This document shows positions 16,424 through 64,000 of a stretch of DNA of 64,000 nucleotides, piece after piece. The notes under the pieces were generated by a model, which was not told where the DNA came from, searched no databases, and saw nothing but the letters and a program-made list of their open reading frames with translations. Location: positions 248,001-312,000 of IMG/VR virus record IMGVR_UViG_3300011113_000640. The stretch is one strand, 5' to 3'. The translations under genes and the position numbers were made by a program. How positions within the stretch are numbered: position 1 is the first letter of the stretch; each line of letters starts with the position of its first letter.

Positions 16424-16452
16424 ATTATAGCAAAAACGGATTTATTGGTCAA
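16424..16452 (-). promoter_or_regulatory. Sigma70-type early promoter
   Basis: TTGACC-N17-TATAAT with TG extension. Confidence 0.85.
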
Positions 16453-18723: not shown

Positions 18724-18792
18724 ATGCAGTTAATCAAAGGCGGAAGGCTGTGAGACACAGCCTTGTTGAACCACAGCCTTCCGGGCCTATTC

Positions 18793-38246: not shown

Positions 38247-38480
38247 TTATTCCTTTAGTTGCCACATTAAATGCTCCTGACGAGCATGCCATTTGTATTC
38301 AATCACAGGTGTTCCTGGACCGGTCCAGGTAGCAATTCCACGATAGGCCAAGGTTCCGGGCCATAGTCTACGTCCTGTGATCTCGCAGGTTTTGGGCCAT
38401 ACCACCCTGCACAGTTTCCACTCGGCCCGAATATAAAAACTGCCATTGGGGCGATTGATACGTTCTGGTATTGGACTCAT
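38247..38480 (-). CDS. Small hypothetical protein
   Basis: ATGA overlap with queE stop. Confidence 0.7.
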   Translation of the reverse strand: MSPIPERINRPNGSFYIRAEWKLCRVVWPKTCEITGRRLWPGTLAYRGIATWTGPGTPVIEYKWHARQEHLMWQLKE

Positions 38481-46650: not shown

Positions 46651-47601
46651 TCACCAAATAAAATTTAACATGTAATACTCTATAACTCTTTGTAATTCTT
46701 GATCAAAGTTGGCCAGGGGTTGCCACCCCAAGGCCTTGAGTTTAGAGTCATTGATTGCATAACGCACATCTTGGCCTTGTCGGTGGCTGCCAGTGATGTA
46801 ATCTTCCCAACGATCTTCAGCTCCACCACCGGGATAGTAATGCAACAGCTTTTTGATAACTTCCTTGTTGGGCATTTCTGCATTGCCTGAAATGTTATAA
46901 ATTTCGTTGATGCTACCGTGATCGATCACAGTCATTACTGCACGAGCAGTGTCTTCGACATGCAACCAAGTCCTCTGCGGCTCACCACGATCATGCAGGT
47001 CAATTTTCCTGCCTATTTTGAGATACTTGATTGACTTGGGGATTAATTTTTCAACATATTGACCAATACCATAGTTGTTGGTAGGACGCACAATTACATA
47101 TCGGATGCCATAGGTTCTTGCCCAGGCCAGGATCAACATGTCGGCCGCTGCCTTTGAAGCTGAATAAGGATTGCTGGGTTTCAGCAGATCAGTTTCGGCG
47201 TGGGCACCCGAATCGATATCACCATACACTTCGTCGGTTGAAAAATGCAACAATGTTGGTTGCTTTTGAACAGGCTGTTGTCGGATCAGTTCCAACAGAC
47301 GGTGTACTCCGTTGATGTTACTGTGCAGGAATACCTCAGAACTCATGATCGAATTGTCCACATGAGTTTCAGCTGCTGTGTTTATGATATAATCGCAGTC
47401 ATACAGTCGGTCAAGATCATTGATGTCTTTGTGTATGAACTTAAATGTATCGTATTTTTGAAACTCACTTAGAAAATCAAAATTGCTGGCATAGGTACCT
47501 TTGTCCACACCAATCACATGCCATCCACGTGCCAGACATTGTCGTGTGACATGTACTCCTATGAATCCCAAACAACCTGTGACATATACAATTTTTTTCA
47601 T
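46651..47601 (-). CDS. rmlB: dTDP/NDP-glucose 4,6-dehydratase
   Basis: TGCLGFIG, AAETHVDNSI, STDEVYG, PYSASKA, NNYG..Q..EKLIP. Confidence 0.93.
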   Translation of the reverse strand: MKKIVYVTGCLGFIGVHVTRQCLARGWHVIGVDKGTYASNFDFLSEFQKYDTFKFIHKDINDLDRLYDCDYIINTAAETHVDNSIMSSEVFLHSNINGVHRLLELIRQQPVQKQPTLLHFSTDEVYGDIDSGAHAETDLLKPSNPYSASKAAADMLILAWARTYGIRYVIVRPTNNYGIGQYVEKLIPKSIKYLKIGRKIDLHDRGEPQRTWLHVEDTARAVMTVIDHGSINEIYNISGNAEMPNKEVIKKLLHYYPGGGAEDRWEDYITGSHRQGQDVRYAINDSKLKALGWQPLANFDQELQRVIEYYMLNFIW

Positions 47602-48461: not shown

Positions 48462-48911
48462 CTAACCTTCGTAGATGGCACTGTTGGCACCGTGTTCGGC
48501 ACATTCTACACGCACACAGTAACAACGGTCATTGGTCTTTTTGCGGATTAGTTGATCAGCAAAGTTAAAAGCATGTTCGGCAAACTTCTCTGCACCCACT
48601 CCATTGAATATTCTAATCTCTACTAGGTCCAATGCTTGTAATTCTTCAAACTTAGCCAAGTGTGGATCTCGTTTATCCAGGGCCAACTTGTGATCAAAAT
48701 GATCTTCCAACCAGGCTTTTAGTTCTTTGAGTCCGCCAAAGTCCACTGCCCAGTTTTTATCGTCCAGACTGTCACAACCAAAAGTGAATGTGAACGCCAG
48801 ACTGTAACCATGTAGCAAGTGACAGTGACTGTGATCAGCATTGGGCTGTCTAAATACAGCACTCAAGCCAATGTTGTGCCCGTAGTGTTTTGTTGAATAA
48901 TACTTTGCCAT
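48462..48911 (-). CDS. queD: 6-carboxy-5,6,7,8-tetrahydropterin synthase
   Basis: CHLLHGY (CxxxHG), VDFG, FDH, GAE. Confidence 0.9.
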   Translation of the reverse strand: MAKYYSTKHYGHNIGLSAVFRQPNADHSHCHLLHGYSLAFTFTFGCDSLDDKNWAVDFGGLKELKAWLEDHFDHKLALDKRDPHLAKFEELQALDLVEIRIFNGVGAEKFAEHAFNFADQLIRKKTNDRCYCVRVECAEHGANSAIYEG

Positions 48912-49219: not shown

Positions 49220-49399
49220 TTAATCGTAGTAAACGTATCCTGATTGTTTATTAGTTATGTTTGCACCAGGTCGATCTATTTCTTTTGAGGGCTTGTCCCA
49301 AAGTCTAGCGCGACCTTCTCTCTGCTGTTGTTCGGTGTCGGGGTGCTGTTGTTTATACCGTGTTAACCATTGATCAAATTCGCTGATGTATTTTACCAT
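49220..49399 (-). CDS. 59-aa DUF3460-like protein (MVKYISEFDQWLTRYKQQHPDTEQQQREGRARLWDK...GYVYYD), not in ORF track
   Basis: Hand-translated; Y.S.F..L...K..P..E..Q..GRA.LWDK pattern recalled for the betaproteobacterial DUF3460 family. Confidence 0.75.
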   Translation of the reverse strand: MVKYISEFDQWLTRYKQQHPDTEQQQREGRARLWDKPSKEIDRPGANITNKQSGYVYYD

Positions 49400-49764
49400 T
49401 TTTTGTAATTGCCTTTGCCGGGTATTGTATTACGGACACCGCCCACTGGATCTTCTACATCGCCCTTTTGACGTGGAATAAGATGTATGTGTGGATACAT
49501 CACAGTTTGACCCGCTGCTTCTCCTGAATTATAACCAATGTTGAATGCATCGCATTCTCCTTCTGCAACCATGTGGATGCCGTCGGCTAGGGCATCTTCA
49601 AAGGCCCTGACTATCCAATTAGGATTGTCGTTGTCTTTGGGCACATACAATCTATGACCGGGTGTGCATGGATAGCGATCAAGATACACCATGGTCGTGG
49701 TTTTTTCATCTACCTGTTGGTCCCAGGGTGCTATGCCTGCCTTTTGTGCTTCGATCAATTTCAT
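49393..49764 (-). CDS. HIT-family nucleotide hydrolase
   Basis: DRYP.TPGH.L.VPK, AGQTVMYPHIHLIPR. Confidence 0.9.
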   Translation of the reverse strand: MKLIEAQKAGIAPWDQQVDEKTTTMVYLDRYPCTPGHRLYVPKDNDNPNWIVRAFEDALADGIHMVAEGECDAFNIGYNSGEAAGQTVMYPHIHLIPRQKGDVEDPVGGVRNTIPGKGNYKKW

Positions 49765-49765
49765 T

Positions 49766-52252
49766 TTAGTCAAACCAGTATCTAATTTCGTGCATGACAC
49801 GATAATGATTCAGCCCACTGGTAGCAGTGGTCATCGCGCTGAATCGATATTGTGTGTTTTTGTTTATCATGCTTGTGTATAAACCTCTGACATAAGGTGT
49901 GACCTGATTCTGTACCGACATCTTTTTATGAGTATACTGTATGTTACCTTGATTGTCAATACTGGTCGGCAGTTTTGCTTCTACTGAACCACTTAACACT
50001 ACAGGTTTGACACCACCATACAACCCAAAATGTCCTCCTCTCTTGACATCACCAAATCTATAACCAGTTTCTGCCCAGGCACCGGTCATGTTATTTACAC
50101 GGGTGATCAATCCTGGATTGATGTTGGTAGACACGTGCATCAAGCTGGCCTGCGCACTAAATCCTCTGTGTCGGAAAGTTACCACATTATCCAAGATGCC
50201 AGAACTGTTTATGCTTCCCCAACTGCCACCAAACGCTATCCAAGGGTTGGCGTTGAGATTGGTGTACTGCACCCCATAGGTAAATTTGCCTTTGCTGTAG
50301 ACCTTGGGCAGGCCCACGGTGTATTGCGTGGGTCGGTTCAATCCCATCCCTGTGTTGTCTCTGCCGGCAAAATCGGTGCCAACTCGCATGCCGTTGACCG
50401 TGGTCAAAGCACCGTTGACAAGATATTCTGCATGGCTGGTCAGTTCATATTGATCATTGTGTTCGGTATTGAAACCAAATGCATTCATGCGGTTGACATT
50501 CATTACCGAAATGTTGCTGTTGTAGCCTCGGCCCAGTTGATCCATGACCACAACTGATCCATCACCAAGATTGACTCCTGTCAAATATCCTGTTATGGGC
50601 TTGAGGCCGCTGAGGGTGGCCAAACTCAGTTGCCCTACTGGTTTGAATATGTCTTCTTCGCTGATCACAGCCACACCGTTGAAATAGGTTGCCGCGGTTC
50701 TGGCCAAAACTTCATTGGCCTGAGGCAAGGTCATGTATGGCCATTTTTGCAAAATAAGATTTACTGCACTCTGGGCAGTGGTCACTGTGGATGCGCCAAG
50801 TTCACTCATATACACAGCCAACTGGCGATCAGATCCATTCATAAAGCTCACAGCTGTCAACAAATAAAGTTTGCCGCCTGGACCACGCATCACGTTGACA
50901 GTATTGCCCATGTTGTCGCCGTTTTGCATTTCTGCGGCCTGTTTGACAAAATCAGTCAATAATTTTTGGTGTGCTGCCACGTACTTGCCGTCGGAGCTCT
51001 TTAACAAAAATTGATGGCTGGTGTTATTGCCACTGAAATCGGCTCCGCTGACCAAGATATCTTCTTTGCCGTCGCCGTTGATATCAACAAATTTGGGCTT
51101 GTATGTTGAGTAGGTGTTGGTGTTATAGCCAACTAGCACGTCGTCAGTGACATCAGTGAAATTGCCGCTGCCGTTGTTTTTCAAAAACTGTATTTCACTG
51201 AATTTCGATGCACTGTGATTGGGTCTACTGAAAATCAACACGTCGAGTTTGCTGTCGTCGTTGAAATCATAACTGACAGCTCGCACATTATGACTGCCAC
51301 CAAAATTATTACTGGCCCATTTGGGCAGCTCAAACCTGGGTGTAGGCAAGGTGTGTAATACAGTGAACACCGCTTCGTTGGAAGCATTCAAAGACCAGGA
51401 GAACAGTTTGGTAGCGGCACTGCCCGCGGTCCACTGGTCAGTGGCTATGATTTGTCCTTGTCCATTGCCCAGAAAATCACCAATGGCCACAGCACTGGCT
51501 CCGCGTATAACAGGATTGGTCTGACTTTGAGTATGCACCGAGAAACTGCTGATGCGGTTGTTCAAGGCTATGGTTGTGTTGGTTCCATAGTCAGCAATAA
51601 CAATGTCCTTGTAACCGTCGCCGTTGAGGTCTCCAACCGCACTATCATGGCTCCAGATAGGAACAGTGGTCAGCGTCTGTCGTTCAAAACTTGTACCGTT
51701 ATTACGGAAGAAGTATGCAGGACCATAGTGTTGCATGTCAGTACCAGGAGACACAAACAGATCATGGCGTCCAGTTTTAAAGAAGTCGTCGAGTTTGATG
51801 CTGGGTTCTGTGCCCAGGATCACATTGGTGTCATTGGGGAACCATTGTGCGGTTTTGTCTACCAGTTGACCGTTGTTCCAACTAAACATGCTGAGCCTAA
51901 AACTGCCCCACTCTGGCACTGTGGCCGGCTGTGTCATTCTACCTGCGATGAGCACATCATCTTTACCGGTACCGGTAAGATCTGCTGTAAATGTGTCAGC
52001 CACAGCCCAGGCATGTCCATTGTTGACTCCGGGTGCATTGATCAAGGGATCAATTGTGGCTACCTTGACAGGTGTGGCATAGGGCACTTCAGTTCTGAGA
52101 TAAGGATTTGATGATACCGGAGGAACCATAACTGGCGGAGCCATGTATGCAGTTCCTGGATTGCCAGCGCCTCCACCACCACCACCACCACCGCAACCGG
52201 TAATGACGATAACTGTGCCAAAAAGACAAGTCCAAAGCAGTTTGCGCCGCAT
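49766..52252 (-). CDS. Lipoprotein with FG-GAP/VCBS repeats and C-terminal beta-barrel-like region
   Basis: Lipobox ITGC followed by poly-Gly; DLNGDGYKD, DFNDDSKLD, DINGDGKED; beta-rich C-terminus ending IRYWFD. Confidence 0.8.
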   Translation of the reverse strand: MRRKLLWTCLFGTVIVITGCGGGGGGGGAGNPGTAYMAPPVMVPPVSSNPYLRTEVPYATPVKVATIDPLINAPGVNNGHAWAVADTFTADLTGTGKDDVLIAGRMTQPATVPEWGSFRLSMFSWNNGQLVDKTAQWFPNDTNVILGTEPSIKLDDFFKTGRHDLFVSPGTDMQHYGPAYFFRNNGTSFERQTLTTVPIWSHDSAVGDLNGDGYKDIVIADYGTNTTIALNNRISSFSVHTQSQTNPVIRGASAVAIGDFLGNGQGQIIATDQWTAGSAATKLFSWSLNASNEAVFTVLHTLPTPRFELPKWASNNFGGSHNVRAVSYDFNDDSKLDVLIFSRPNHSASKFSEIQFLKNNGSGNFTDVTDDVLVGYNTNTYSTYKPKFVDINGDGKEDILVSGADFSGNNTSHQFLLKSSDGKYVAAHQKLLTDFVKQAAEMQNGDNMGNTVNVMRGPGGKLYLLTAVSFMNGSDRQLAVYMSELGASTVTTAQSAVNLILQKWPYMTLPQANEVLARTAATYFNGVAVISEEDIFKPVGQLSLATLSGLKPITGYLTGVNLGDGSVVVMDQLGRGYNSNISVMNVNRMNAFGFNTEHNDQYELTSHAEYLVNGALTTVNGMRVGTDFAGRDNTGMGLNRPTQYTVGLPKVYSKGKFTYGVQYTNLNANPWIAFGGSWGSINSSGILDNVVTFRHRGFSAQASLMHVSTNINPGLITRVNNMTGAWAETGYRFGDVKRGGHFGLYGGVKPVVLSGSVEAKLPTSIDNQGNIQYTHKKMSVQNQVTPYVRGLYTSMINKNTQYRFSAMTTATSGLNHYRVMHEIRYWFD

Positions 52253-52747: not shown

Positions 52748-52950
52748 TTGGCTTCGGGTTTAGTTTGCGACTGGATAGGTGTGCATCGCATCTCAGGTGG
52801 CTCGCACAATTCCCATCGGCCATTCCTGGTATCCATCCTGTACATTTGGCCGTTGAGCACTATGGGAGTAAAGGCACCATTGTCCACGCTGGGGTGGACG
52901 AATGTGTATCCTGTGAGAACTACTAGCACGCTTGTGAGTATGATTTCCAT
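52744..52950 (-). CDS. Small protein with N-terminal TM
   Basis: Overlaps both neighbours. Confidence 0.7.
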   Translation of the reverse strand: MEIILTSVLVVLTGYTFVHPSVDNGAFTPIVLNGQMYRMDTRNGRWELCEPPEMRCTPIQSQTKPEAK

Positions 52951-53789
52951 TATCTAGGTGCGAACTCTTGTTGCAGTTTGATATTGTCCATGAACTCTTT
53001 CTTGGTGCCAGGATCAGTCTTAAACGCACCTCGGAGCACCGTGGTCTGTGTCAGGCTCGAATGTGCCATGATGCCGCGATTTTCACAGCAACCATGAGTG
53101 GCTTGGATATAAACACCAATATGTTCAGAATCTGTAGCACGAGCAATCTCTCGGGCAATGTCGTTGGCTAGTTCCTCTTGAAGAGTACCCCGGCGAGCAC
53201 ACCATTGAGCAATCCTAGTATACTTACTAAGACCAATGAGCTTGTTAGCCGCAATGATTCCGATGTAAGCAACTCCAGACACAGGCTGATGATGATGACT
53301 ACACATACTGCGCAATTCACTGCGTACAACCAACATACCTTCATATCTATCCTCACTATCGTTAGGGAAAGCAGTGGCATCAGGGCGGGGTTCATACCTA
53401 CCTGCCATGATTTCGTTGAAATACATCTTGGCCAATCTACGTGCTGTGCCAGCACTGTTGGGATCTGTTTCTCTATCAATCAACAAGGTATCCAGCACTC
53501 GTTCAAATGCTTCTGTGGCTTCATCAATCAACTGTTTGCGTTCTTGCTCTGATTCGATAAACTCACTGACGTTGTCTCCGGCCCAGAATCGTTTACCGCT
53601 GGCCCGCATGCTGTCTCGGATAACCTGGCTCAGTGGGCGACCTTCGTCGGGATCTACTACAGCATCCTCATAACCAGGATGATATGGCGCCTCTGCCACA
53701 ATACGGCTTTGTTGTAAGGCATCGAATGTTTTTTGGCTGGCATTATTTTTCACTGCGTTCTCTCTATCTTCACTGGTAAATGTTGTCAT
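52950..53789 (-). CDS. folE: GTP cyclohydrolase I
   Basis: SMCSHHH.P, GLSK..R, LQE, H.C...RG. Confidence 0.95.
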   Translation of the reverse strand: MTTFTSEDRENAVKNNASQKTFDALQQSRIVAEAPYHPGYEDAVVDPDEGRPLSQVIRDSMRASGKRFWAGDNVSEFIESEQERKQLIDEATEAFERVLDTLLIDRETDPNSAGTARRLAKMYFNEIMAGRYEPRPDATAFPNDSEDRYEGMLVVRSELRSMCSHHHQPVSGVAYIGIIAANKLIGLSKYTRIAQWCARRGTLQEELANDIAREIARATDSEHIGVYIQATHGCCENRGIMAHSSLTQTTVLRGAFKTDPGTKKEFMDNIKLQQEFAPR

Positions 53790-53800: not shown

Positions 53801-53828
53801 ATTATACAGGTTATTTAGATTTTTGCAA
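53801..53828 (-). promoter_or_regulatory. Promoter TTGCAA-N16-TATAAT with nested TCTAAATA
   Basis: Near copy of 61768-61796. Confidence 0.65.
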
Positions 53829-54402
53829 GATCAAATGGAATTTTTCTCAAGTCTGGATAAATTCCTGGTTGCGATTTGGGGTCAATAGTTGGTAATAGTT
53901 CCAAGCCCTTGGCACACAATTCCAAAGTAGGGCAATAATGCCACCCTAAAATTAATTCTGTTTCTTCTTGCCAAGGTATGTGTAAGTCTCGCCCATCTGC
54001 TCTTTGTCGACTAAACACTTTGTATGCTTCTGCATCGTCCAGCAATATTGCTCCCGCCTTGCCCAACTGCAAAGGTTTGGTCCAACCAAAGCTCAAACAT
54101 TGAAATTGACCTGCACGATACATGTTGCGTTCCAAGCGTCTGGCACTGTCCCATATACGAGAATTGGCAAATTGATATTCGCCTCGCCAGGTTTGATCAG
54201 TAAGTTTGTAATCAACACCCAGATGAGTCAGCATCATAGGAACACTGAGATAAGTGTATGCTGTAAAACTGGTTTGTTTTACCCGATCATATCTGAAACA
54301 TAGTTCAAGAGCATGTGTACAACCATCTGTGAGTACCACATAAGGTGCGCCAGTGTACTCGGCCAAGGCTGATTCAAAGTCAAACAAGGCTTGAAAACTC
54401 AT
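53815..54402 (-). CDS. Short DegT-family PLP-dependent enzyme (195 aa)
   Basis: DGCTHAL, WDSAR, SFGWTKPL..GKAGAIL. Confidence 0.8.
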   Translation of the reverse strand: MSFQALFDFESALAEYTGAPYVVLTDGCTHALELCFRYDRVKQTSFTAYTYLSVPMMLTHLGVDYKLTDQTWRGEYQFANSRIWDSARRLERNMYRAGQFQCLSFGWTKPLQLGKAGAILLDDAEAYKVFSRQRADGRDLHIPWQEETELILGWHYCPTLELCAKGLELLPTIDPKSQPGIYPDLRKIPFDLAKI

Positions 54403-54761
54403 TCGCTTAGATGATCCTTTTTGATTTCTCGCACCGAACATCCTAGTTGTTCAGCTATGGAATTTTTTAGCTGTATTCTCTGATTATTTAAATTTCTTAT
54501 CATGATAGCTCTACGGCCTAATTCTTCCAACGACAATTCAGATTCTCTGCCTGATTTTAATTCTGCTTCTAAATTCCAAATTTCACTGTGTATGCCATGC
54601 AGTTGAGCTAATTCTTGTTCGACCATGCCAAGATCGTATCCGCTGTCGTTGAGCTGACGATCATAGAAATCAAATTCTTCCTGATTCGCTCCATTGGTCT
54701 TGGCTAATTTTAACTTGGCAATGGCAAATCTGTCTACCAGTTCGATCACAGGAAATATCAT
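54399..54761 (-). CDS. Helical hypothetical protein
   Basis: ELVDR..I..LK, IW.LE, N..R..LKN.I; ATGA overlaps. Confidence 0.75.
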   Translation of the reverse strand: MIFPVIELVDRFAIAKLKLAKTNGANQEEFDFYDRQLNDSGYDLGMVEQELAQLHGIHSEIWNLEAELKSGRESELSLEELGRRAIMIRNLNNQRIQLKNSIAEQLGCSVREIKKDHLSE

Positions 54762-55786
54762 AGATACATGGTCTCAAGTCGTTTAGGATCATCTAAAATC
54801 TTTTGTATTTCAATATTGTTGACATTGGGCCTGCATGGTCGGCATAGGCCAACATTGGTTCGATTGTAAATCTCTTGGTGTCGTTTGCCCAACCACAGGT
54901 CTCGGAAATCGCCGGAATCCCAAGAACCTAGTTCAAACTGTGGATCACCTTTGCCTTCACAACACACATAAATCTTGCCATTGGCACAAAACACTGGAAA
55001 ATGAAACATTTGGTGGCATTTTTTATAAGTTCTTGGCAGGGTCTTGTTGGTGTTAACCCAATATTTTACATTGTGCTTTTGTCCAAGATGTTCTAACATG
55101 GTCAAGGTAGCATCCGTCAACGTATGTGCCTGATTGTTTACTATCACTGGTCTAAAATACAACATTCTGCCGCCCAGGCGTTTGACCAGGGCAAACAAGT
55201 CATCCATGGCTTGATAATTGTCATTGAGCGGATTGATCAAGCATTTGAAATCTACATTGGCTCCGGCTTCGATCAAGGCCCGGGCATTGTCACACACCTT
55301 GTTGAACAAACTCCTGGCTGTAAGACTGCGTCGGATCTGTTCATACAGATCCTCAGTGCCAGCATCTATATCTATGCCAATCCAGGCTATCTTGCGTAGT
55401 TTTTCCACGGACACACTGCTCAACAATTTGTCTAGATTGCTTCCATTGGTAGTGATACTACAAAAAAATCCCAAGTCAATGGTGTGTTCTATCACATGTT
55501 CATAACCAATCAATACCGTGGGTTCGCCGCCGCCTGGATAGGTAATGGTGTGCGTGGTACCATAACTTCGAGGACTGTGCGCTCGCCACCCGGCCAATTT
55601 ATCCAAGAGGTCAATGTATTCAGTGTATTTTTTTTGCACCGGTTCTTGAGCTCTAAATTCTGCCGAGTTGCAATAGTAACAATCTTGATTGCACACATTG
55701 GTCAGATCGATGTCTACCTGCGCAGGCAAGATACCCATGCTGTCTTGATTTTTCATCCAGTGGACGAGTTCGGCAAATTGATACAT
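54758..55786 (-). CDS. Radical SAM/SPASM protein
   Basis: CNQDCYYC, GGGEP, C-terminal C..YVCC..C..CRP. Confidence 0.9.
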   Translation of the reverse strand: MYQFAELVHWMKNQDSMGILPAQVDIDLTNVCNQDCYYCNSAEFRAQEPVQKKYTEYIDLLDKLAGWRAHSPRSYGTTHTITYPGGGEPTVLIGYEHVIEHTIDLGFFCSITTNGSNLDKLLSSVSVEKLRKIAWIGIDIDAGTEDLYEQIRRSLTARSLFNKVCDNARALIEAGANVDFKCLINPLNDNYQAMDDLFALVKRLGGRMLYFRPVIVNNQAHTLTDATLTMLEHLGQKHNVKYWVNTNKTLPRTYKKCHQMFHFPVFCANGKIYVCCEGKGDPQFELGSWDSGDFRDLWLGKRHQEIYNRTNVGLCRPCRPNVNNIEIQKILDDPKRLETMYL

Positions 55787-55789: not shown

Positions 55790-56740
55790 TTACTTAGTGC
55801 TATACCAAGCCCAGGCATGACGAACCATGTCCTCAAGCCCATATTGTGGTTGCCAAGAACTGACCTTTGCAAATTTGGTACTGTCGGCTGTAAGTATGGC
55901 CGGATCTCCTGGCCTTAAAGGTCCTACTCCTAAGTTTACACGTTGACCCGTGATCTGTTCGGCCATGTTGATGATCTCTCGATTGCTGTGGCCGGTGTTG
56001 GTACCAAGATTGTATAGGCCAGTGGGTATTTTCGTGTCGCAGACCAGGATATGTGCATCGGCCAAGTCTTCCACGTGTATGTAATCTCTGATACAGGTAC
56101 CATCCACAGTAGGGTAGTCCGTGCCATTGAGGGTAAAGTGTGTGTTGTCTCTAATGCTTTCTAAGACTCTAGCGACGATGTGTGTGGCTCCAGGTCTTTG
56201 TCCATGTCGTGCCTGGCTGTCTGCTCCGCAGGCGTTGAAATAACGAAAGCTCACATAGTCCAAGTCATAGGCACGATGATAACTCTGCAACATCCAATCC
56301 ACCATGAGCTTGCTTTGACCATAGGGGCTAATGGGCTCTGCAGGATCTATTTCCTGGCAGGGTGTTATTACAGGATTACCATATGTGGCCGCACTTGAAC
56401 TAAAGATCAATCTGGTTTTAATTTGTTTTTGTACCAACCAATCGCAAAGTATCTTGGTCCGAACAAAGTTGTTCTCGTAGTATTCCTCAGGATCCAACAT
56501 GCTAGGACCCACAAGACTGGTGCCGGCACAGTGTATGATGGCATCGGGCTGGAATGTTTCTATGGCACGCAGAGACACTTCACCGGCAAAATCTGCCACC
56601 AGCCACTTGGCACCGCAGTCGATCAAGGGATTGGGATCAAGACTACGATCAATAGCAAACACACTGTGCCCACGATCCAATAAACCAAGAACTGTTTGGC
56701 CACCTATGTAGCCAGCACCACCGGTGACTACTACTCTCAT
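55790..56740 (-). CDS. galE: UDP-glucose 4-epimerase
   Basis: TGGAGYIG, SSSAATYG, YGQSK, RYFN, DGTCIRDYIHV.DLA. Confidence 0.93.
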   Translation of the reverse strand: MRVVVTGGAGYIGGQTVLGLLDRGHSVFAIDRSLDPNPLIDCGAKWLVADFAGEVSLRAIETFQPDAIIHCAGTSLVGPSMLDPEEYYENNFVRTKILCDWLVQKQIKTRLIFSSSAATYGNPVITPCQEIDPAEPISPYGQSKLMVDWMLQSYHRAYDLDYVSFRYFNACGADSQARHGQRPGATHIVARVLESIRDNTHFTLNGTDYPTVDGTCIRDYIHVEDLADAHILVCDTKIPTGLYNLGTNTGHSNREIINMAEQITGQRVNLGVGPLRPGDPAILTADSTKFAKVSSWQPQYGLEDMVRHAWAWYSTK

Positions 56741-57936
56741 ACTTTTCTCACGTGATATTTGGCCTGGCTCACATGGTCTCTGTAGCGATTGCCTGCACGG
56801 TTCCAAGACTCACCCTTGCCCTCCAGGATATCTACGATACGATCCACAGTACCGTCGGTCCAGTCTGAGATAAGACCCTGGTTGTGATGCGGTGCTCCCA
56901 GCAAGTTTTCTAACTTGTGGAAGGCATCATCAATGCTCCAAGGCACATACAGGCGATTAGGATCGTCAGCAAAGGTTTCAGGGAAACTGCGATAAGCAGG
57001 ATACAGCACGTTGCAACCAAGAGTATCGGCTTCTGATACTGTGTTAGATACCCAGTCTTGTAAAGCACAATTAAACAACACACGAGTATCGTTGAGAAGA
57101 TTGTAATAATCATTTTTCTTCAAGTCCTCATAGATTTTGAGTCGGCCTTGTGATTCTAACTCTCTGGCCCGCAGGATATAACGCACATTGTTGCTTCGTA
57201 GTGGTCCGCCTTGAAACACAGCGAACTCGATATCCTTGTGTCGTCCTTGAGCCAGATACATTTCAATCAAGTCCATGTAAAAGTCTGGTTGTTTCTCTTG
57301 ATCAAATCTCGCGGCAAAGCCCACACGCATTTTTCTTTGGTCAAATGGTTTCATATTTTCTGCGCCACCAATGCGTTCCAGCACTTCTTGTTTGCCAAAT
57401 GCTAATCCACTGATGTTGTAGATTGGAGCAGTCCATCCTGCAATACGCATGTGGGCAACCATTTCTTCGTTGGTGGCCAATACCCCTGTCACGAATTGGT
57501 TAACCATCTTTTCATACGTCGACATCCACTCCGCCATGCCCCATACATGAACAAAGTCATCCGGATCAATGGCTTGAGCAAGACAACGTACATAAATGCG
57601 AGGACGCTGAGACTCAGGCACTTGATCCAGAATATAAGGTAAGCTCTCGATACCGGGCTGAAACATGTCTTCAAAGTAGATAATATCTTCACGGGTGACT
57701 TCTCCATTCCTCATCATTTGCACCAGATTCATCATCTGGCTCATGCTAAAGTAACTGCGGCCATGTGCATCCAATACCTGGCCCACGCTGATGCTTTGCG
57801 TGTTGTCAATGGTGGATCCCGGAACATACACAACATCTAGACCGCGGCGTTCAAATACCCTGCGATTCCATTCTGTGAGTTGTAGGGTGTAACGAGCTTC
57901 GTAGCTCTCTAGACCCATGTAGAACAATTTTCTCAT
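56737..57936 (-). CDS. GT-B (GT4-like) glycosyltransferase
   Basis: FAARFDQEKQP, LQDWVSNTVSEA..G, YP..RSFPE. Confidence 0.8.
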   Translation of the reverse strand: MRKLFYMGLESYEARYTLQLTEWNRRVFERRGLDVVYVPGSTIDNTQSISVGQVLDAHGRSYFSMSQMMNLVQMMRNGEVTREDIIYFEDMFQPGIESLPYILDQVPESQRPRIYVRCLAQAIDPDDFVHVWGMAEWMSTYEKMVNQFVTGVLATNEEMVAHMRIAGWTAPIYNISGLAFGKQEVLERIGGAENMKPFDQRKMRVGFAARFDQEKQPDFYMDLIEMYLAQGRHKDIEFAVFQGGPLRSNNVRYILRARELESQGRLKIYEDLKKNDYYNLLNDTRVLFNCALQDWVSNTVSEADTLGCNVLYPAYRSFPETFADDPNRLYVPWSIDDAFHKLENLLGAPHHNQGLISDWTDGTVDRIVDILEGKGESWNRAGNRYRDHVSQAKYHVRKV

Positions 57937-58154
57937 ATGTTGCGACCCAGCCTGCGAGCATCTTCCACCCACATGTTCTTGGCATTTTTGCCCTGGCTGA
58001 ACTTGTTGTACTGTTGCCAGGCATAGGCCTTGAAGTTGTAGAGATCTTCCTCGCGGAATCTGTAGCCATAGTCGCGACAGAACTCCAGGAAGTTGCTCAA
58101 CTCTTCTAGTGTTTGTAATGCACGTGGATTGGGACGGTATTCACGCTTGCCCAT
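57933..58154 (-). CDS. Small hypothetical protein
   Basis: AAGGA SD; ATGA overlap with GT gene. Confidence 0.8.
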   Translation of the reverse strand: MGKREYRPNPRALQTLEELSNFLEFCRDYGYRFREEDLYNFKAYAWQQYNKFSQGKNAKNMWVEDARRLGRNI

Positions 58155-58165
58155 GATGTTTCCTT

Positions 58166-58615
58166 TTAAATTTTGATTGATTGATAAGGGCGAGAAGTTT
58201 CATACTTGATAAGGCAACCGTTCTCGCCATCTTCGGCCACCTCAATCCATACAGCACGCTCGGGATAACGTGCAGCTATCTGTGTATATAGGTCATCTGC
58301 GATCATCTCGCAACTTTTCCAGTCTAGAGCTAGAACGGTATTTTGACCATGATACAACGACTCGAGCCATCGTTTGAACTGGATAAACTCGATGTCCCGG
58401 TCATTGTGCCACACATCGATCCACACCCGGAAATGAAAAATGTGCCTATGAGGACTAGCAAGAAACGATACATCATACTCTCCTGCTGTATTTAACTTGG
58501 GATCAGTGGCAGCTGCCGGATAACAATGGATTCCTTCTCGACGGAACGTGACCCAGATCTTACGCTCTGCATGTTCCTTGATGCGTTCTATATTTTCTCT
58601 TTCGCTTTGAATCAT
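58166..58615 (-). CDS. QueD-paralogue T-fold protein (DpdL-like candidate CDG decarboxylase)
   Basis: EGIHCYP..LASPHRHIF (LxxxHRHxF), RDIEFI, SCEMIA, EDGENG. Confidence 0.7.
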   Translation of the reverse strand: MIQSERENIERIKEHAERKIWVTFRREGIHCYPAAATDPKLNTAGEYDVSFLASPHRHIFHFRVWIDVWHNDRDIEFIQFKRWLESLYHGQNTVLALDWKSCEMIADDLYTQIAARYPERAVWIEVAEDGENGCLIKYETSRPYQSIKI

Positions 58616-58839
58616 AGTGCGTTCCTCATTTCAGTGATCCACTCATCCACACGTGCCTCGGCTTCCTTCTGCGTCATGGCCGGCACAGTAATACGGTATG
58701 GTGTGCCTGGTCTATGACTGATATCATAGCGTATGGTTCCATTGAGTATCATATCGTTTTCATCACGCAACACTGTAAACTCTTGCAAGTTCATAGCACG
58801 ATAAATCAGTTCTTCTGCTTGCTGTTTTACATCATTCAT
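58612..58839 (-). CDS. Small hypothetical protein
   Basis: ATGA overlaps on both sides. Confidence 0.7.
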   Translation of the reverse strand: MNDVKQQAEELIYRAMNLQEFTVLRDENDMILNGTIRYDISHRPGTPYRITVPAMTQKEAEARVDEWITEMRNAL

Positions 58840-59354
58840 TTAAGCACCTCATCTTGGGTATATTTAGACCAGTCAGTGAATACTGACCTCCGTTGTAACG
58901 CATGTAGACTGTGGCACCATACTCCAGGATTGGTTGCCGCAAAATCTCGATCATCCAGTTTGAGTGTGGCATTGTAGCCAAACTGACGTATGTAAGGTAG
59001 TTTGACCGAAATCATGGGAATAAAGTTATGGAACTCTACCAAACTGCTTTCCAGTAAGCCTTCGGCCTGTGCTACATCCAGGTCCAAGGTACAATAGTTG
59101 GGAATCTGTTCTAGACAAACACGGATCATCCATTCCCAATCACGCCAACCATCGCCGTCGTTTTTATCTAACGCTGGAAAACTTTGATTGGCACCAAAGT
59201 AAATGTGTTCACAATCATTGTTGTTGAATTGTTGTAGAACAATCTGTGGATCTTGTATGCCCACCACAAACAAGGTCTTGAGACCATATGCTGGCGAGTG
59301 TTCTACTTCGGTTCCAATAAAGAAACTTACCGCTTCATGTCCTTGTCGGTTCAT
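58836..59354 (-). CDS. Hypothetical protein in deazaguanine operon
   Basis: FFIGTEVEHSPAYGLKTLFV, HIYFGAN, NPGVWCH; ATGA-coupled to the TGT-like gene. Confidence 0.75.
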   Translation of the reverse strand: MNRQGHEAVSFFIGTEVEHSPAYGLKTLFVVGIQDPQIVLQQFNNNDCEHIYFGANQSFPALDKNDGDGWRDWEWMIRVCLEQIPNYCTLDLDVAQAEGLLESSLVEFHNFIPMISVKLPYIRQFGYNATLKLDDRDFAATNPGVWCHSLHALQRRSVFTDWSKYTQDEVLK

Positions 59355-60922
59355 CGTATCTGATCATGTTCGAGTTGATCTAATCGGGCCTGTTGGTCCG
59401 GGCTAAATTGTTCTTCTAATTGTACACTGTCTGACTCGTTGTCGTCAACTGTTTCGAACAGTTGGTTGAACATGGGTCTGCCGCTCTTGGCTTTTTTGCC
59501 TTTGAATCCACGTGTGCCAATAATTTCCATCCAATAGCGATCATACTTTTCAATGATCTTTTCGGCTTCTGCACGATCTGGTGTGGCAAATATCGCATCT
59601 ACAATATCTCGGAAATATTCATGATCACCATCTTCTTTACGCATCATGTAGGGATACCGGCCAGAATCGTATTCTCTATTGGCACGCTGTACCGCTTCGA
59701 TGTGCATCCAAACATTGTGACCCATCAACAATGCGTAACTAAAGCTATCCCACGATGTCTTGCCTTCTTTGCCAATCTTGTTTAAGTCTCCTGGCTTGTA
59801 GATACAGATGTCTTTCATCTGTAGTTGTTTGCTGATAGGACTTTCGTCAAAGTGATCAATGAGTCCATCGGCCAACACAGCCGGTCCAAACTGGCGTGTG
59901 TCTGTGGCATACTTCTTGTCGTCCACAATGGGACTCATTCTGTAACACCATTTGCCTTCGTGTGGAAGATCAATGTGATGATACACTTGACCGTTGGCAG
60001 TTGCCAAGAATGGACTGGCACAATCAAATGATATAGTAAATGCTGGATTAACATATCGGCGAACCGCACGTTGGATGTCGGTAAGCAACACTGCCCATTC
60101 AAGTTTACTTGTGCCCAAGAAGTGCATCCAATCATGTACGCCTTCTTGCAATAGGCCATCATGCCGCAAGGCCACAAGTCTACGCAAAATCAGGTGTACG
60201 TCACACATGTTCTGACCGCCCATGGCCCAGCCATCAAAGTGTGTGTCTGGATACTTTGCAGGATCACAATACTCTTTCATGATTTCATACCAGTCGTCGG
60301 CATTCTTGTGATTGTCGCCTTGTAATACGTTCAGGATCTTGGTACCGCCATTGGCTTTGCCTTTGCGATTGGCCATGAAGTATTCGTTGTTGTACTTGGT
60401 GGCATCAATTGCCTGCTGCAGAGTTTTAATCTGGCAGGCATCGCTTGCCTTTTGATCATGGATTACCCAGGTTGGAATATCCAATGTCATACAATAGTCA
60501 CTGACACTGTCCAACCAAGTTAGCACTGCCTTGCGTTTGGTTTCAGCTTTTTTACAGCCCGAATTGGCCTTCCAGTCACCTTCCCACAGGCCCTTGGCAA
60601 TCTGGAATCCACCTGAATCGCCCAGCATCAAGGTATTAGGATCACGGTTACGCACCATGTCTTCTGACCAGTCCTGTTTGTTCAAATCAAGATTGGCATG
60701 GCCACCCGAATATAGAGACCACCGGTAAGGAAACAGACCTTTTTGGCTGTTGAGCCAGTTCATCTGCTCCATGTCCTGGATACCAGCGGGCATCCTTGCT
60801 GGATCCACATAAGGTCCAGCAGGATCACGTTGCTTGCCTACGAATGTAGCATAGAAACCACTGATAGCCGGCAAGAACACAGCATAATCATTTTGCTTGG
60901 CGGTAAGGTTATCTTGACTCAT
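59351..60922 (-). CDS. TGT-fold guanine transglycosylase (DpdA-like)
   Basis: DSGGFQ, LDIP, NVLQG, GWAMGG, HFLG, SFDCASP, HN; start MSQDN. Confidence 0.85.
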   Translation of the reverse strand: MSQDNLTAKQNDYAVFLPAISGFYATFVGKQRDPAGPYVDPARMPAGIQDMEQMNWLNSQKGLFPYRWSLYSGGHANLDLNKQDWSEDMVRNRDPNTLMLGDSGGFQIAKGLWEGDWKANSGCKKAETKRKAVLTWLDSVSDYCMTLDIPTWVIHDQKASDACQIKTLQQAIDATKYNNEYFMANRKGKANGGTKILNVLQGDNHKNADDWYEIMKEYCDPAKYPDTHFDGWAMGGQNMCDVHLILRRLVALRHDGLLQEGVHDWMHFLGTSKLEWAVLLTDIQRAVRRYVNPAFTISFDCASPFLATANGQVYHHIDLPHEGKWCYRMSPIVDDKKYATDTRQFGPAVLADGLIDHFDESPISKQLQMKDICIYKPGDLNKIGKEGKTSWDSFSYALLMGHNVWMHIEAVQRANREYDSGRYPYMMRKEDGDHEYFRDIVDAIFATPDRAEAEKIIEKYDRYWMEIIGTRGFKGKKAKSGRPMFNQLFETVDDNESDSVQLEEQFSPDQQARLDQLEHDQIR

Positions 60923-61025
60923 TGCGTCCTGAAAGCCATCCAGCAAGTTTTCCAATACCCACGCTTAAAAAAATAAGACCGAATATCAACACTACACTGA
61001 GTCCTAAACCAATCAACAGGTCCAT
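60909..61025 (-). CDS. 38-aa single-TM peptide MDLLIGLGLSVVLIFGLIFLSVGIGKLAGWLSGRNESR
   Basis: Hand-translated; TAATG overlap with clamp gene. Confidence 0.6.
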   Translation of the reverse strand: MDLLIGLGLSVVLIFGLIFLSVGIGKLAGWLSGRNESR

Positions 61026-61747
61026 TATTTGCTCTGTGCTGGCAGGATATAGTTGTAAACAGCAAGACCTGAATCCACAGTGATCATGGCCGCACCATCA
61101 TCACTGATTTTAAATGTCTTGTCGCCGGTCAAATCAAGTATGCTGATTACCAGGCCAATGGGCCATGACCAAGAACGCTTGAGTGTGCCCGTTACACCAG
61201 GATGGAACACAAAGTTACCCGAATGAGTTGAGTGATCGCCAAAGCTAAACTTTAGGTCACCGTTTTCGGTTTTGGCCTGGAAGTTTACTTCTTCAGCATT
61301 GGCTTGTGCCTGCATTTTCAGTCGCTGGATAGCGGCCACAGTCGGAACAAACTCAATGTGCCAATTTACACCTTTAAATTTCACAGTCTTGAGTTTTTCG
61401 TTGATGATTTCACTTGCCATGAATCTGTAGTTGTTTTTGAAGTCGCCAGTGGCGTTTTCAAAGTTGATGCCGTCGGGTGCTCCGGTATCTTTTCTCGTGA
61501 TTGACAGTCTGGCGTTGTCTTTATATTCCGACAGGCCCAGTAAGATGCGCAGTTTGCTCAAGTTGGGCATGCCAAAGTTGCCAATGAATTCGGCCACGGG
61601 TGCGGCAAATGCGCCTTCTACTACCACGCTACGATCCTCGGCTACTGCGCCAATCACTGTGGATTTGTCATCACCGGTGATCTTGATTAGGTCAATGCAA
61701 CCTAATTTCTGTGTGTGTTCTACTAAATCTAATAAATGATCTTTCAT
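61025..61747 (-). CDS. DNA polymerase sliding clamp (gp45/PCNA-like)
   Basis: 240 aa, FGMPNLSKL, C-terminal YNYILPA; close to PolB. Confidence 0.7.
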   Translation of the reverse strand: MKDHLLDLVEHTQKLGCIDLIKITGDDKSTVIGAVAEDRSVVVEGAFAAPVAEFIGNFGMPNLSKLRILLGLSEYKDNARLSITRKDTGAPDGINFENATGDFKNNYRFMASEIINEKLKTVKFKGVNWHIEFVPTVAAIQRLKMQAQANAEEVNFQAKTENGDLKFSFGDHSTHSGNFVFHPGVTGTLKRSWSWPIGLVISILDLTGDKTFKISDDGAAMITVDSGLAVYNYILPAQSK

Positions 61748-62758: not shown

Positions 62759-64000
62759 TTACCACTCAAATAAAGTTTGGAACGTGTTTTCTGTGTTGGT
62801 GGCACTGGCTAAATCCCATCCCAACACACCCAGCAAGTTGTCAATCTTTTGATCCACCACGGTGGCTTCCATTTCTGTGTCATCAAAGGGAAGTTCCTTG
62901 AACCATGCAGGCAAATGTATTTCGTCTGTGGGATAGCCTATGCTGGTCCAACCCAGGGGATTTGACTTGAGTTTGCACACGATGGTCTTCATGCCATCAA
63001 CAATCTGCATGCTGTACTTGTCTGAGTTCATCCTGCGTAAGTTGTTCCAGTTGATGGCCGCACGCACATGGCCGGGCATGTTAGCCTTGCCCAAGCGTTC
63101 TTCTTCCTTGGCATACTTGGTTAGATTGTTCACACGCTTGGGACTTCCTTTCTCCCAACCTGGACGCTCTTTGAACGCATACTTGAACTCACGTATCTTT
63201 TCAATAATCTCGTCGCGTGTCCGGCCTGTGAGCACATCGTTGAGAATCTCACTGAGGAAGTCCTGGATGACCTTGGGCGTATCTGATCTCTTGAGATCCA
63301 AGCCCATGGCCTTGACTCGACCTGGTTCGCCATGCGTGTCCACACGCTTGTTCTCTTTGTCATAGTACATGACAGCATAACGTTTCTTGGTAATGAACAA
63401 GCCCTTGCTAGCCACAATCTCACGACCGCCACGTATGACTTCGCCCATGGCTCTGGGCACATGAAATGCCTGTTCCATGAATCCAGGAAAACTTTCATTG
63501 ACCTGATCTGCGATTGAATTGTATAGTTGTACCGCAATCTCACGCGACCAGGTCATATTGCCGGCTTCGATCTCAGGTTTTAACACAGGATATGCCGAAA
63601 AGTAGCAGGAGTCTGTGTCACCATAGATGATGGCTTCGCCTACATGGTCGTACACACCTGTGATACACTCGTTGACATAAGCATCCATGTGTCGAGCAAT
63701 GGCACGACCTGTGAGTGTAGTTGATTGACCGATGCGTTTATCAAAGAATCTACAACCAGGATTGAGAATAGCACCATACAATGAATTCAAGTTAATCTTT
63801 TTGACCAACTGACGCTTGTCCCAGTATTCTTCATCCTCGGGATTCTTGCACTCCTTGAGCCGGGCCTGCATTTCTTTGCGTTCAGCATACCAGCGTTTGA
63901 GCAGGCCAGGGATCACTGCCTCTCGCTCATAGGTAAAGATAGTGCCATTGGCTGTGATCATCCAGGGCTGGTTGCTGTCAAAGATCATGCGCCAGACTTC
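62759..64000 (-). CDS. polB: Family B DNA polymerase (T4 gp43-like), C-terminal part; continues beyond window
   Basis: KKINLNSLYG, YGDTDS, KKRYA, MGLD.KRSDTP. Confidence 0.96.
   Translation of the reverse strand, partial: EVWRMIFDSNQPWMITANGTIFTYEREAVIPGLLKRWYAERKEMQARLKECKNPEDEEYWDKRQLVKKINLNSLYGAILNPGCRFFDKRIGQSTTLTGRAIARHMDAYVNECITGVYDHVGEAIIYGDTDSCYFSAYPVLKPEIEAGNMTWSREIAVQLYNSIADQVNESFPGFMEQAFHVPRAMGEVIRGGREIVASKGLFITKKRYAVMYYDKENKRVDTHGEPGRVKAMGLDLKRSDTPKVIQDFLSEILNDVLTGRTRDEIIEKIREFKYAFKERPGWEKGSPKRVNNLTKYAKEEERLGKANMPGHVRAAINWNNLRRMNSDKYSMQIVDGMKTIVCKLKSNPLGWTSIGYPTDEIHLPAWFKELPFDDTEMEATVVDQKIDNLLGVLGWDLASATNTENTFQTLFEW

Follow-up and report, generated by a model that had tools for sequence, protein, structure and literature searches.

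The closest described system is the DpdA3/DpdL system of phage phiST (Hutinet/Cui et al. 2023, PMC10516641), in which FolE, QueD and QueE are combined with DpdL, a QueD-like paralogue carrying LxxxHRHxF in place of the QueD CxxxHGH motif, and a DpdA-superfamily transglycosylase, without QueC, and the DNA is measured as 2'-deoxy-7-deazaguanosine (dDG). FolE, QueD and QueE make 7-carboxy-7-deazaguanine (CDG) from GTP, and DpdL is proposed to decarboxylate CDG to 7-deazaguanine, an activity that has never been reconstituted (PMC10516641). Full dDG is also reported for vibriophage VP1 (bioRxiv 10.1101/2025.10.29.685425), whereas ACP17 dpdA plus dpdL alone gave no dDG in E. coli. Other systems join sugars to related or analogous acceptors. 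In T4, the GT-B enzymes alpha- and beta-GT use a UDP-sugar to decorate a non-canonical base and so evade restriction, but the acceptor is a hydroxymethyl pyrimidine made before replication. In tRNA, GT4-type enzymes of the QTMAN/GTDC1 family add a hexose to a 7-deazaguanine derivative through a cyclopentenediol hydroxyl. In the huimycin/dapiramicin pathways, HuiG transfers a sugar from UDP-GlcNAc directly to a free 7-deazaguanine-type base (bioRxiv 10.64898/2026.04.15.718813), although these are actinomycete secondary metabolites made from preQ0, with no transglycosylase for nucleic-acid insertion. DNA glycosylation is not known outside hydroxymethyl pyrimidines, and the 7-deazaguanines reported in DNA so far carry small substituents.

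Here we analyzed a 64-kb window of a 320-kb jumbo-phage genome (IMG/VR record IMGVR_UViG_3300011113_000640), in which a first-pass annotation made from the sequence alone had noticed a TGT/DpdA-like protein, a QueD paralogue, a glycosyltransferase (GT) and GalE in one run after a sliding clamp, with folE, queD, queE and ugd further downstream and no queC or queF. This observation is confirmed, as the run is real and tightly coupled (Table 1), with five ATGA start/stop overlaps linking DpdA/p172, p172/p75, p75/DpdL, p73/GT and GT/GalE, although a 75-aa ORF (p75) had been omitted. The block is not a chance juxtaposition, being conserved in 66–80 of 80 close relatives. The clamp identity is supported only by homology to a gene annotated as sliding clamp in Sinorhizobium phage Phosso, picked up in a profile search, and by the position after PolB. 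Pfam scans of the roughly 65 ORFs submitted from across the window (mainly ORFs of 100 aa or more) found no QueC, QueF, thymidylate-synthase-like or TET/JBP protein.

Table 1 Features of the deazaguanine module and downstream genes in the 64-kb window. Relatives are the 80 close relatives of the locus.
Coordinates	Strand	Length (aa)	Feature	Sequence evidence	Relatives with gene
61025–61747	-	240	Clamp-like protein	36% identical to PA5oct EST35_0314 and 34% to Vibrio 2.275.O gp465; no Pfam or PDB hit	
59351–60955	-	534	Long-form DpdA-like protein (predicted TGT fold)	Start probably the ATG at about 60922	
58836–59354	-	172	p172, unknown fold		
58612–58839	-	75	p75, variable insertion		17
58166–58615	-		DpdL homologue	LASPHRHIF; phrog_17812 1e-34	
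57933–58154	-	73	p73, basic protein between DpdL and GT	No homologue found outside the clade	78
56737–57936	-		Putative GT4-type (GT-B) glycosyltransferase	Start probably the ATG at 57936	
55790–56740	-		GalE-like UDP-hexose 4-epimerase	Start probably the ATG at 56740; Pfam Epimerase 1e-49	79
54758–55786	-		Radical-SAM/SPASM protein	Pfam Radical_SAM plus SPASM	6
54399–54761		120	ORF co-occurring with the radical-SAM/SPASM gene		6
53815–54441	-	about 200	Short DegT-like protein	Partial Pfam DegT match, 5.5e-9	70
52950–53789	-		FolE, GTP cyclohydrolase I	Pfam 2.2e-39	74
48462–48911	-		QueD (CPH4 synthase)	Pfam PTPS 3.6e-14; CxxxHGY motif aligned with phage QueDs	
40011–40559	-		Type I phosphoribosyltransferase (PRT)	Pfam Pribosyltran 2.8e-16; PRPP motif VDDINDTG; homologues next to QueE in BUCT-ZZ01 (annotated XGPRT) and PA5oct	
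38477–39352	-		QueE (CDG synthase)	44% identical to annotated QueE of BUCT-ZZ01 (E 1e-80), 34% to X1, 31% to PA5oct; N-terminus FYSLQGEG...GCNFTC (FxSLQGEG)	
37487–38242			NadE-like protein	Strong NAD_synthase hit, weak QueC hit beneath it	
36194–37429	-		Ugd-like UDP-sugar dehydrogenase	Pfam UDPG_MGDP_dh central and N-terminal domains	

The 534-aa protein gave no hit in Pfam (including PF01702), NCBIfam or PHROGs, or by PDB sequence or profile search. However, an AF2 model built on a 69-sequence alignment (pLDDT 90.4, pTM 0.90) has a TGT-type TIM-barrel fold, with Foldseek PDB top hits to Z. mobilis TGT (1s38, E 1e-7, probability 1.0), ArcTGT and Cap10, and hits in BFVD to phage TGT/DpdA proteins. 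Within the alignment, D113-S114-G-G116 (GDSGGFQ), H278 and D311 are invariant, and D159 and Q212-G213 are conserved in 90% or more of sequences. These motifs align with ADSGGLQ and SYDS in the DpdAs of X1, ACP17 and BUCT-ZZ01, and their equivalence to TGT D102/D280 is inferred from the motifs rather than from a superposition. The CxCxxC...H zinc site of canonical TGTs is absent, as we found no conserved Cys cluster and only C384 (57%) and H413 (87%) show conservation. By hhalign, the protein matches ACP17 DpdA (96.8%), the X1 'queuine tRNA-ribosyltransferase' (95.7%) and phiST DpdA3 (76%, over 82 columns only). It does not belong with DpdA3, since tblastn gave no hit to phiST CGPG_00065 or the Campylobacter phage DpdA3 (about 260 aa) and the lengths differ greatly (534 versus 259 aa).

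The QueD paralogue is a DpdL homologue. We found homologues by tblastn in 28 phage records, including ACP17 and phiST CGPG_00067 (tblastn 5e-8, blastp 1.5e-15). In a 13-sequence alignment (numbered on its first sequence), H21, L43, H47, H49, F51, H61, E67, E92 and E117 are invariant. An hhalign comparison of the DpdL profile with a phage QueD profile gave 80.7%, over only 45 C-terminal columns, while the published HHpred value for phiST DpdL is 99.89%. As in phiST, the context within the window is FolE, QueD, QueE and a DpdA without QueC.

The GT of the window itself scores 17.9 bits against Pfam Glycos_transf_1, below the 26.4-bit gathering cutoff, while X1 (45.5 bits) and BUCT-ZZ01 (26.5 and 28.3 bits) pass and all 7 aligned homologues match at E of 1 or less (best 8e-12). 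The conserved features R210-x3-EKQP and D/E-x7-E are those expected of GT4 enzymes: R210, E214, K215 and the second E (E302) are invariant, and the first position is E in five sequences and D in the window and BUCT-ZZ01. A profile search of the PDB returned GT4 enzymes only, with the same region aligned to GlgM (6tvp), and not T4 alpha- or beta-GT. An Atlas model of the nearest cluster, rather than of the window protein, matches GT4 models at TM 0.67–0.75. The Atlas feature search also lists QTMAN clusters at 0.97, but this resemblance is a lead only, as the QTMAN_N domain (PF12038) was not found in any of the 7 homologues at E of 1 or less.

Subsequently, we compared the locus with other phages to estimate whether the GT is a passenger or a part of the deazaguanine module. 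GT homologues lie in more than 150 viral loci and within DpdA/DpdL clusters of six cultured phage groups, annotated mostly as hypothetical: PA5oct (order DpdA-GT-DpdL), ACP17 (p172-DpdA-GT-DpdL-QueE), Xanthomonas X1/BUDD (in X1, GT-DpdA-DpdL-QueE), Synechococcus BUCT-ZZ01 (DpdA-DpdL-GT), Burkholderia BCSR5 (GT directly upstream of DpdA) and Phosso (clamp-x-DpdL-GT-x-FolE). These clusters share the DpdA-DpdL-GT core, often with PRT and p172, at protein identities of 21–66%, and the window clade adds GalE, the short DegT-like protein and p73. Among 80 GT-seeded viral loci (37–44% identical to the ACP17 GT, forming 16 clusters at 70% identity), the genes found within 10 kb of the GT were DpdL in 77, DpdA in 71, FolE in 67, p172 in 56, QueE in 55, PRT in 50 and GalE in 34. 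Among 78 DpdL-seeded loci, 71 carry the GT and 55 carry p172; of the 7 without the GT, 5 are cut less than 400 bp after DpdL and only 2 lack it with room to spare. DpdL and GT are adjacent in 105 of 155 loci. The sampled loci are the best 80 of more than 570 relatives and many share one phage backbone, so they are not independent. The BUCT-ZZ01 GT is 66% identical to the window GT, while its DpdL is 37.5% and its FolE 32.5% identical; the GT therefore seems to have moved between lineages and again landed next to DpdL. By contrast, GT-less DpdL modules use a short DpdA3, and phiST, which is of that type, has no GT, p172, PRT or GalE. There are thus two module types, and the common one, whose DNA has never been chemically analyzed, includes a predicted sugar transferase.

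The interpretation offered by the first-pass annotation, that this operon makes a sugar-bearing deazaguanine with the 172-aa protein supplying a missing step, is partly supported. The analyses bear out a TGT/DpdA-fold enzyme, a DpdL homologue and a GT that is a genuine, conserved member of the module, and our literature searches found no report of a glycosylated deazaguanine in DNA. The suggested QueE-like N-terminus of p172 is not supported: hhalign probability against the QueE of the window is 0.08%, there is no radical-SAM cysteine motif, and there is no Pfam or PDB hit. The protein is nevertheless co-inherited with the GT, has a homologue directly upstream of the ACP17 DpdA (E 7e-15) and more than 6100 metagenomic homologues, all unnamed, and its invariant residues include E16, E18, K132, D135, N142 and W146, so a role in the pathway stays plausible. 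The claim that no alternative acceptor source for the GT exists holds only for this 64-kb window.

The above analyses suggest that this is a second type of DpdL module, replacing guanine in phage DNA with a 7-deazaguanine derivative that most likely ends up carrying a sugar (probability of about 0.55). In this view, FolE, QueD and QueE, identified here by homology, make CDG; DpdL would decarboxylate it; the long-form DpdA would exchange guanine in DNA for the deaza base; the PRT may salvage the released guanine; and the GT, translationally coupled to a GalE epimerase that would supply a UDP-hexose, would transfer a sugar to the deazaguanine, either as free base before insertion or on DNA afterwards. 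What the data establish is the gene run, its coupling and the linkage of the GT to DpdL and DpdA, with the DpdA fold resting on a model, whereas CDG decarboxylation, guanine exchange in DNA, guanine salvage, the sugar transfer, its product and the order of reactions are inferred. As 7-deazaguanine has no hydroxyl, the acceptor chemistry is not obvious; candidate atoms are the exocyclic N2, the position used in huimycin and dapiramicin, and C7. The 172-aa and 73-aa proteins would be accessories, and the expected benefit is resistance to restriction and other DNA-targeting defences. PA5oct DNA resists G-site restriction enzymes and is hit by nucleases that sense hypermodified DNA, but its base is chemically undetermined (PMC12191111).

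Other explanations are each considerably less likely. The module could make plain dDG (or dCDG), as in phiST and VP1, with a merely co-transcribed GT serving virion proteins, the host envelope or a small molecule, and the large nucleotide-sugar island in the window could feed such a non-DNA target. However, the GT is present in nearly every non-truncated long-DpdA module across several phage backbones, is adjacent to DpdL in most loci and is not linked to structural genes, and the phages measured as dDG are of the GT-less type, at least for phiST. About as unlikely is that the GT acts on the free base or a nucleotide as a transient or soluble intermediate, such as a glycosyl handle removed later or a huimycin-like metabolite, with the PRT making deazapurine nucleotides, so that virion DNA carries no sugar. 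The action of HuiG on a free deazapurine, the frequent co-occurrence of a PRT and the CDG phosphoribosylation of tubercidin biosynthesis speak for this, but a DpdA, which needs a free base, accompanies the module, no glycosidase or exporter is conserved in it, and the setting next to replication genes favours a DNA end product.

Modification of host or phage tRNA rather than DNA is improbable. Although the closest solved structures are tRNA-guanine transglycosylases, the gene sits between the polymerase/clamp-like genes and the base-synthesis genes in PA5oct, Vibrio 2.275.O, Phosso and all relatives, PA5oct DNA is restriction-resistant at G sites, the BFVD neighbours are phage DpdA-type proteins, and the TGT zinc motif is lacking. 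Least likely of all is glycosylation of a hydroxymethyl pyrimidine made by genes outside the window, which would fit the known DNA glycosyltransferases acting on hmC or hmU and a genome of which only 64 of 320 kb was inspected; the absence of ThyA-like or TET genes among the scanned ORFs, the tracking of the GT with DpdL rather than pyrimidine genes and the GT4-only PDB hits speak against it.

A sugar on a deazapurine would be a new class of natural DNA base, with consequences for restriction and CRISPR evasion, for modification-sensing defences (END nucleases, Dag glycosylases), for sequencing artefacts in jumbo-phage metagenomics and for enzymatic DNA labelling. The comparison also reframes DpdL, since its commonest context includes a GT, which may explain why ACP17 dpdA plus dpdL alone gave no product. 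A bolder and more doubtful possibility is that long-DpdA/DpdL/GT modules, carried by thousands of environmental jumbo-phage contigs and by cultured phages such as ACP17 and the therapy candidate PA5oct, install the first known glycosylated purine in any DNA, with DpdL and the GT acting together, for example through decarboxylation-coupled C7 glycosylation of CDG or N2 glycosylation of 7-deazaguanine. In this window the sugar would then be further tailored by the surrounding amino-, methyl- and carbamoyl-sugar genes, giving lineage-specific glyco-deazaguanines.

A link of Ugd to the module is only putative. The radical-SAM/SPASM gene directly after GalE is not QueE but a variable accessory gene, and all of its NCBIfam hits are far below their cutoffs, the best being viperin-like (56 bits against a 180-bit cutoff). 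The 75-aa ORF is likewise variable, and in locus L004 it sits elsewhere.

The high-coordinate end of the window is one long minus-strand transcription unit, in which a family-B DNA polymerase fragment is followed by a 341-aa protein, a 240-aa clamp-like protein whose identity as a clamp could not be confirmed, and then the run of genes described in the first-pass annotation. In order, this run comprises a 534-aa protein, a 172-aa protein (p172), a 75-aa ORF that the annotation had not listed, a 149-aa protein with the motif L-ASP-HRH-I-F, a 73-aa protein, a glycosyltransferase (GT) and a GalE-like epimerase, and five ATGA start/stop overlaps join these genes. FolE, QueD, a type I phosphoribosyltransferase (PRT), QueE and Ugd lie downstream. 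Pfam scans of roughly 65 ORFs from across the window (mainly ORFs of 100 aa or more) found no QueC, QueF, thymidylate-synthase-like or TET protein. The radical-SAM/SPASM gene immediately after GalE was considered as QueE and rejected; its best NCBIfam resemblance is viperin-like and far below the cutoff. Together with a 120-aa ORF it forms a cassette inserted between GalE and the short DegT-like gene, which is present in only 6 of 80 close relatives. Similarly, the NadE-type NAD synthetase next to QueE was considered as a QueC substitute and rejected because of its strong NAD_synthase match, as its weak QueC hit reflects the shared PP-loop fold, although an amidation role on CDG was not excluded experimentally. 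With these small corrections the gene arrangement reported by the first-pass annotation was confirmed. Coordinates of the individual features are compiled in the table below.

Features of the window and of comparison loci, with coordinates in each record
Record	Coordinates	Feature
Window	62759-63988	Family-B DNA polymerase fragment
Window		341-aa protein
Window		Clamp-like protein, 240 aa
Window	59351-60955	534-aa protein (long-form DpdA-superfamily transglycosylase, predicted fold)
Window	58836-59354	172-aa protein (p172)
Window	58612-58839	75-aa ORF
Window	58166-58615	149-aa protein (DpdL)
Window	57933-58154	73-aa protein
Window	56737-57936	Glycosyltransferase (GT)
Window	55790-56740	GalE-like epimerase
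Window	54758-55786	Radical-SAM/SPASM protein
Window	54399-55786	Cassette of the radical-SAM/SPASM protein and a 120-aa ORF
Window		FolE
Window	49393-52252	828-aa FG-GAP repeat protein and HIT-family protein
Window		QueD
Window	40011-40559	Type I phosphoribosyltransferase (PRT)
Window	38477-39352	QueE
Window	37487-38242	NadE-type NAD synthetase
Window		Ugd
Window	1-47600	Nucleotide-sugar tailoring island
Window	10862-11842; 40595-41656; 46651-47601	SDR epimerase/dehydratases of the island
Window	9829-10932; 43294-44613	Full DegT aminotransferases of the island
Window	42213-43297	Split transketolase-like pair of the island
Window		FkbM and other methyltransferases of the island
Window	3203-4669	Carbamoyltransferase of the island
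Window	12070-12543	Cytidylyltransferase of the island
Window	59-799; 783-2090; 4662-5978	Radical-SAM proteins of the island
Window	15102-19878; 21088-22002; 28491-29231	MoxR-like AAA ATPase, DUF2201 metallopeptidase/VWA protein, TctC-like receptor domain and Gcw_chp outer-membrane-type protein
L005 (Synechococcus phage BUCT-ZZ01)	4093-4554	Type I phosphoribosyltransferase
L001	12946-13380	Type I phosphoribosyltransferase
L005 (Synechococcus phage BUCT-ZZ01)	6010-7353	Second GT4-like glycosyltransferase, 447 aa
L011 (Vibrio phage Bakedbeans)	7212-8363	Longer protein with DpdL as C-terminal domain
L015 (Chryseobacterium phage MA9V-3)	7395-8276	Longer protein with DpdL as C-terminal domain

A megablast search of the region against phage genomes found no match, and searches of the 534-aa protein against Pfam, NCBIfam, PHROGs and the PDB (both phmmer and profile searches) likewise returned nothing. 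By contrast, a library-wide phmmer search gave 932 relatives, and an alignment of 69 of these shows invariant D113, S114 and G116 inside a GDSGGFQ motif, together with invariant H278 and D311, while D159 and Q212-G213 are conserved in 90% or more of the sequences. AlphaFold2 prediction from the single sequence reached a pLDDT of only 35, whereas prediction based on the 69-sequence alignment gave pLDDT 90.4 and pTM 0.90. Foldseek places this model with Zymomonas tRNA-guanine transglycosylase (TGT; E 1e-7, probability 1.0), archaeosine TGT and Cap10, and among viral models it groups with phage TGT/DpdA proteins. By hhalign, the family is linked to the DpdAs of ACP17 (96.8%), X1 (95.7%), BUCT-ZZ01 (94.6%) and BCSR5 (89.4%), but only weakly to phiST DpdA3 (76%, partial), and it lacks the canonical TGT zinc motif. 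We therefore call it a long-form DpdA-superfamily transglycosylase, not a DpdA3. Its homologues in PA5oct, Vibrio phage 2.275.O and Phosso also follow a clamp-like gene, and two of the three lie beside deazaguanine synthesis genes. In Sinorhizobium phage Phosso (loci L003 and L009) the long DpdA lies about 170 kb away from the DpdL-GT-FolE-QueE cluster and each locus sits next to its own clamp-like gene, so the module can be split.

The 149-aa protein matches phrog_17812 (1e-34) and 28 phage records, including phiST CGPG_00067, the founding DpdL, and the ACP17 copy, and it carries the published signature motif. An hhalign comparison of the DpdL profile with the single QueD of the window gave nothing, while a profile-profile comparison gave a partial match. 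The decarboxylase activity of DpdL is a literature proposal that failed reconstitution. In Vibrio phage Bakedbeans and Chryseobacterium phage MA9V-3, both of which have GT-less modules, DpdL is the C-terminal domain of a longer protein with an unrelated N-terminal extension.

To assess whether the GT belongs to the pathway, we searched 50,697 phage genomes by tblastn and found five records, and in every one the hit lies within about 1.6 kb of the DpdL of that phage. Profile searches added PA5oct, BCSR5 and Phosso. Gene orders are clamp-DpdA-GT-DpdL-...-PRT-QueE in PA5oct, FolE-p172-DpdA-GT-DpdL-QueE in ACP17, GT-DpdA-DpdL-QueE in X1, QueE-PRT-QueD-FolE-GT2-DpdA-DpdL-GT in BUCT-ZZ01, DpdL-...-GT-DpdA-QueE in BCSR5, and clamp-x-DpdL-GT-x-FolE-...-QueE in Phosso. 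These phages include genomes annotated with T4-type replication genes (regA, UvsX-like recombinase), a Kyanoviridae cyanophage and several jumbo phages. The BUCT-ZZ01 GT is 66% identical to that of the window, while its DpdL (37.5%) and FolE (32.5%) are far more distant, which suggests that the GT moved horizontally and was retained next to DpdL. The second GT4-like glycosyltransferase of BUCT-ZZ01, directly upstream of its DpdA, hints at a disaccharide or two alternative sugars.

Co-occurrence of the GT, DpdL and p172 genes, which had been proposed as a check beforehand, was examined in IMG/VR. Eighty loci seeded with distant GT homologues carried, within 10 kb, DpdL in 77, DpdA in 71, FolE in 67, the 172-aa family in 56, QueE in 55, the PRT in 50 and GalE in 34, and those GTs form 16 clusters at 70% identity. 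Seeding with DpdL instead gave 78 loci, of which 71 had the GT; five of the seven without it are truncated just after DpdL, and only two, with phiST-like order and a short DpdA, truly lack it. Across all retrieved loci, GT-bearing modules have a long DpdA (median 513 aa), while GT-less ones have a DpdA of 259-326 aa (422 aa in one). These samples are the best-scoring 80 of more than 570 relatives, many of which share a backbone, and they are not independent draws; the pattern in the cultured phages, which differ in genome size and gene order, is the stronger argument. In Vibrio phage 2.275.O (locus L002), the same long DpdA family is paired with a preQ1-type gene set (QueF, QueC, Gat-QueC-like, a YhhQ-type transporter) without DpdL or GT, and the GT therefore tracks DpdL rather than the DpdA family.

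Judged from its sequence, the GT looks catalytically competent. All seven aligned homologues hit Glycos_transf_1 (best 8e-12), although the window copy is below the cutoff; the R-x3-EKQP and D/E-x7-E motifs are conserved; the profile finds GT4 structures in the PDB; and a GalE epimerase overlaps its stop codon. The 172-aa protein forms a large, unnamed family of more than 6100 homologues, has invariant acidic residues and travels with the GT-type module. The first-pass annotation had suggested a faint QueE resemblance at its N-terminus, which is not supported. Comparisons by hhalign against QueE, the Phosso 'glycosylase' and phiST CGPG_00066 gave no signal above noise, and a PDB profile search, Pfam scans of 22 family members and two Atlas searches also gave nothing, with noise-level GT-A-like Atlas hits and a possible DDxD motif representing a weak lead only.

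The above analyses support, by homology, the identity of the CDG pathway genes, DpdL, the predicted DpdA fold and the GT family, while the activities themselves are inferred: that DpdA exchanges guanine in DNA for the deaza base, that DpdL supplies 7-deazaguanine, that the PRT recycles the released guanine or alternatively makes deazapurine nucleotides, and that the GT puts a hexose on the base. The consistent pairing of the GT with a long DpdA is compatible with glycosylation either before or after insertion. Candidate acceptor atoms are N2 and C7. N2 is the position glycosylated in huimycin and dapiramicin. HuiG glycosylates the free base with UDP-GlcNAc. For C7, decarboxylation of CDG could in principle be coupled to C-C bond formation, which is our speculation by analogy with decarboxylative C-glycoside synthases.

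The closest described system is the phiST DpdA3/DpdL pathway that yields dDG (PMC10516641), with which the present module shares FolE, QueD, QueE, DpdL and the absence of QueC (here among the ORFs scanned), while it differs in its DpdA subfamily and in the fixed GT (with or without p172, PRT and GalE). The DNA of phiST is naturally 100% dDG. PA5oct, which carries the same module, has G-site restriction resistance and is sensed by hypermodification-dependent nucleases, but its base was not identified (PMC12191111). Literature searches found no report of a glycosylated deazaguanine in DNA within the full-text collection searched. The first-pass interpretation, that this operon makes a sugar-bearing deazaguanine, is thus partly supported, being considerably strengthened on the linkage side while the chemistry is unproven. 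We consider it very likely that this is a deazaguanine DNA-modification module and likely that the GT functionally belongs to it, whereas the probability that virion DNA carries a sugar-bearing deazaguanine is about 0.55. The system has a realistic chance of yielding a new class of DNA base.

The surrounding sequence holds a very large nucleotide-sugar tailoring island, with three further SDR epimerase/dehydratases, two full DegT aminotransferases and several radical-SAM proteins among its genes, which could tailor the sugar used by the GT or serve another glycan. The small PRT recurs inside deazaguanine modules and lies next to QueE in BUCT-ZZ01 and PA5oct. The FG-GAP repeat and HIT-family proteins sit between FolE and QueD, and the same pair follows FolE in L004, a 336-kb relative. 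The window corresponds to the IMG/VR contig IMGVR_UViG_3300011113_000640 (320,541 bp), in which the GT locus is 100% identical and all 13 tested proteins are found. Its relatives are contigs of about 320-350 kb, so this is an abundant uncultured jumbo-phage clade. Besides a MoxR-like AAA ATPase and a DUF2201 metallopeptidase/VWA protein, the window also carries genes that look bacterial, namely a TctC-like receptor domain and a Gcw_chp outer-membrane-type protein.
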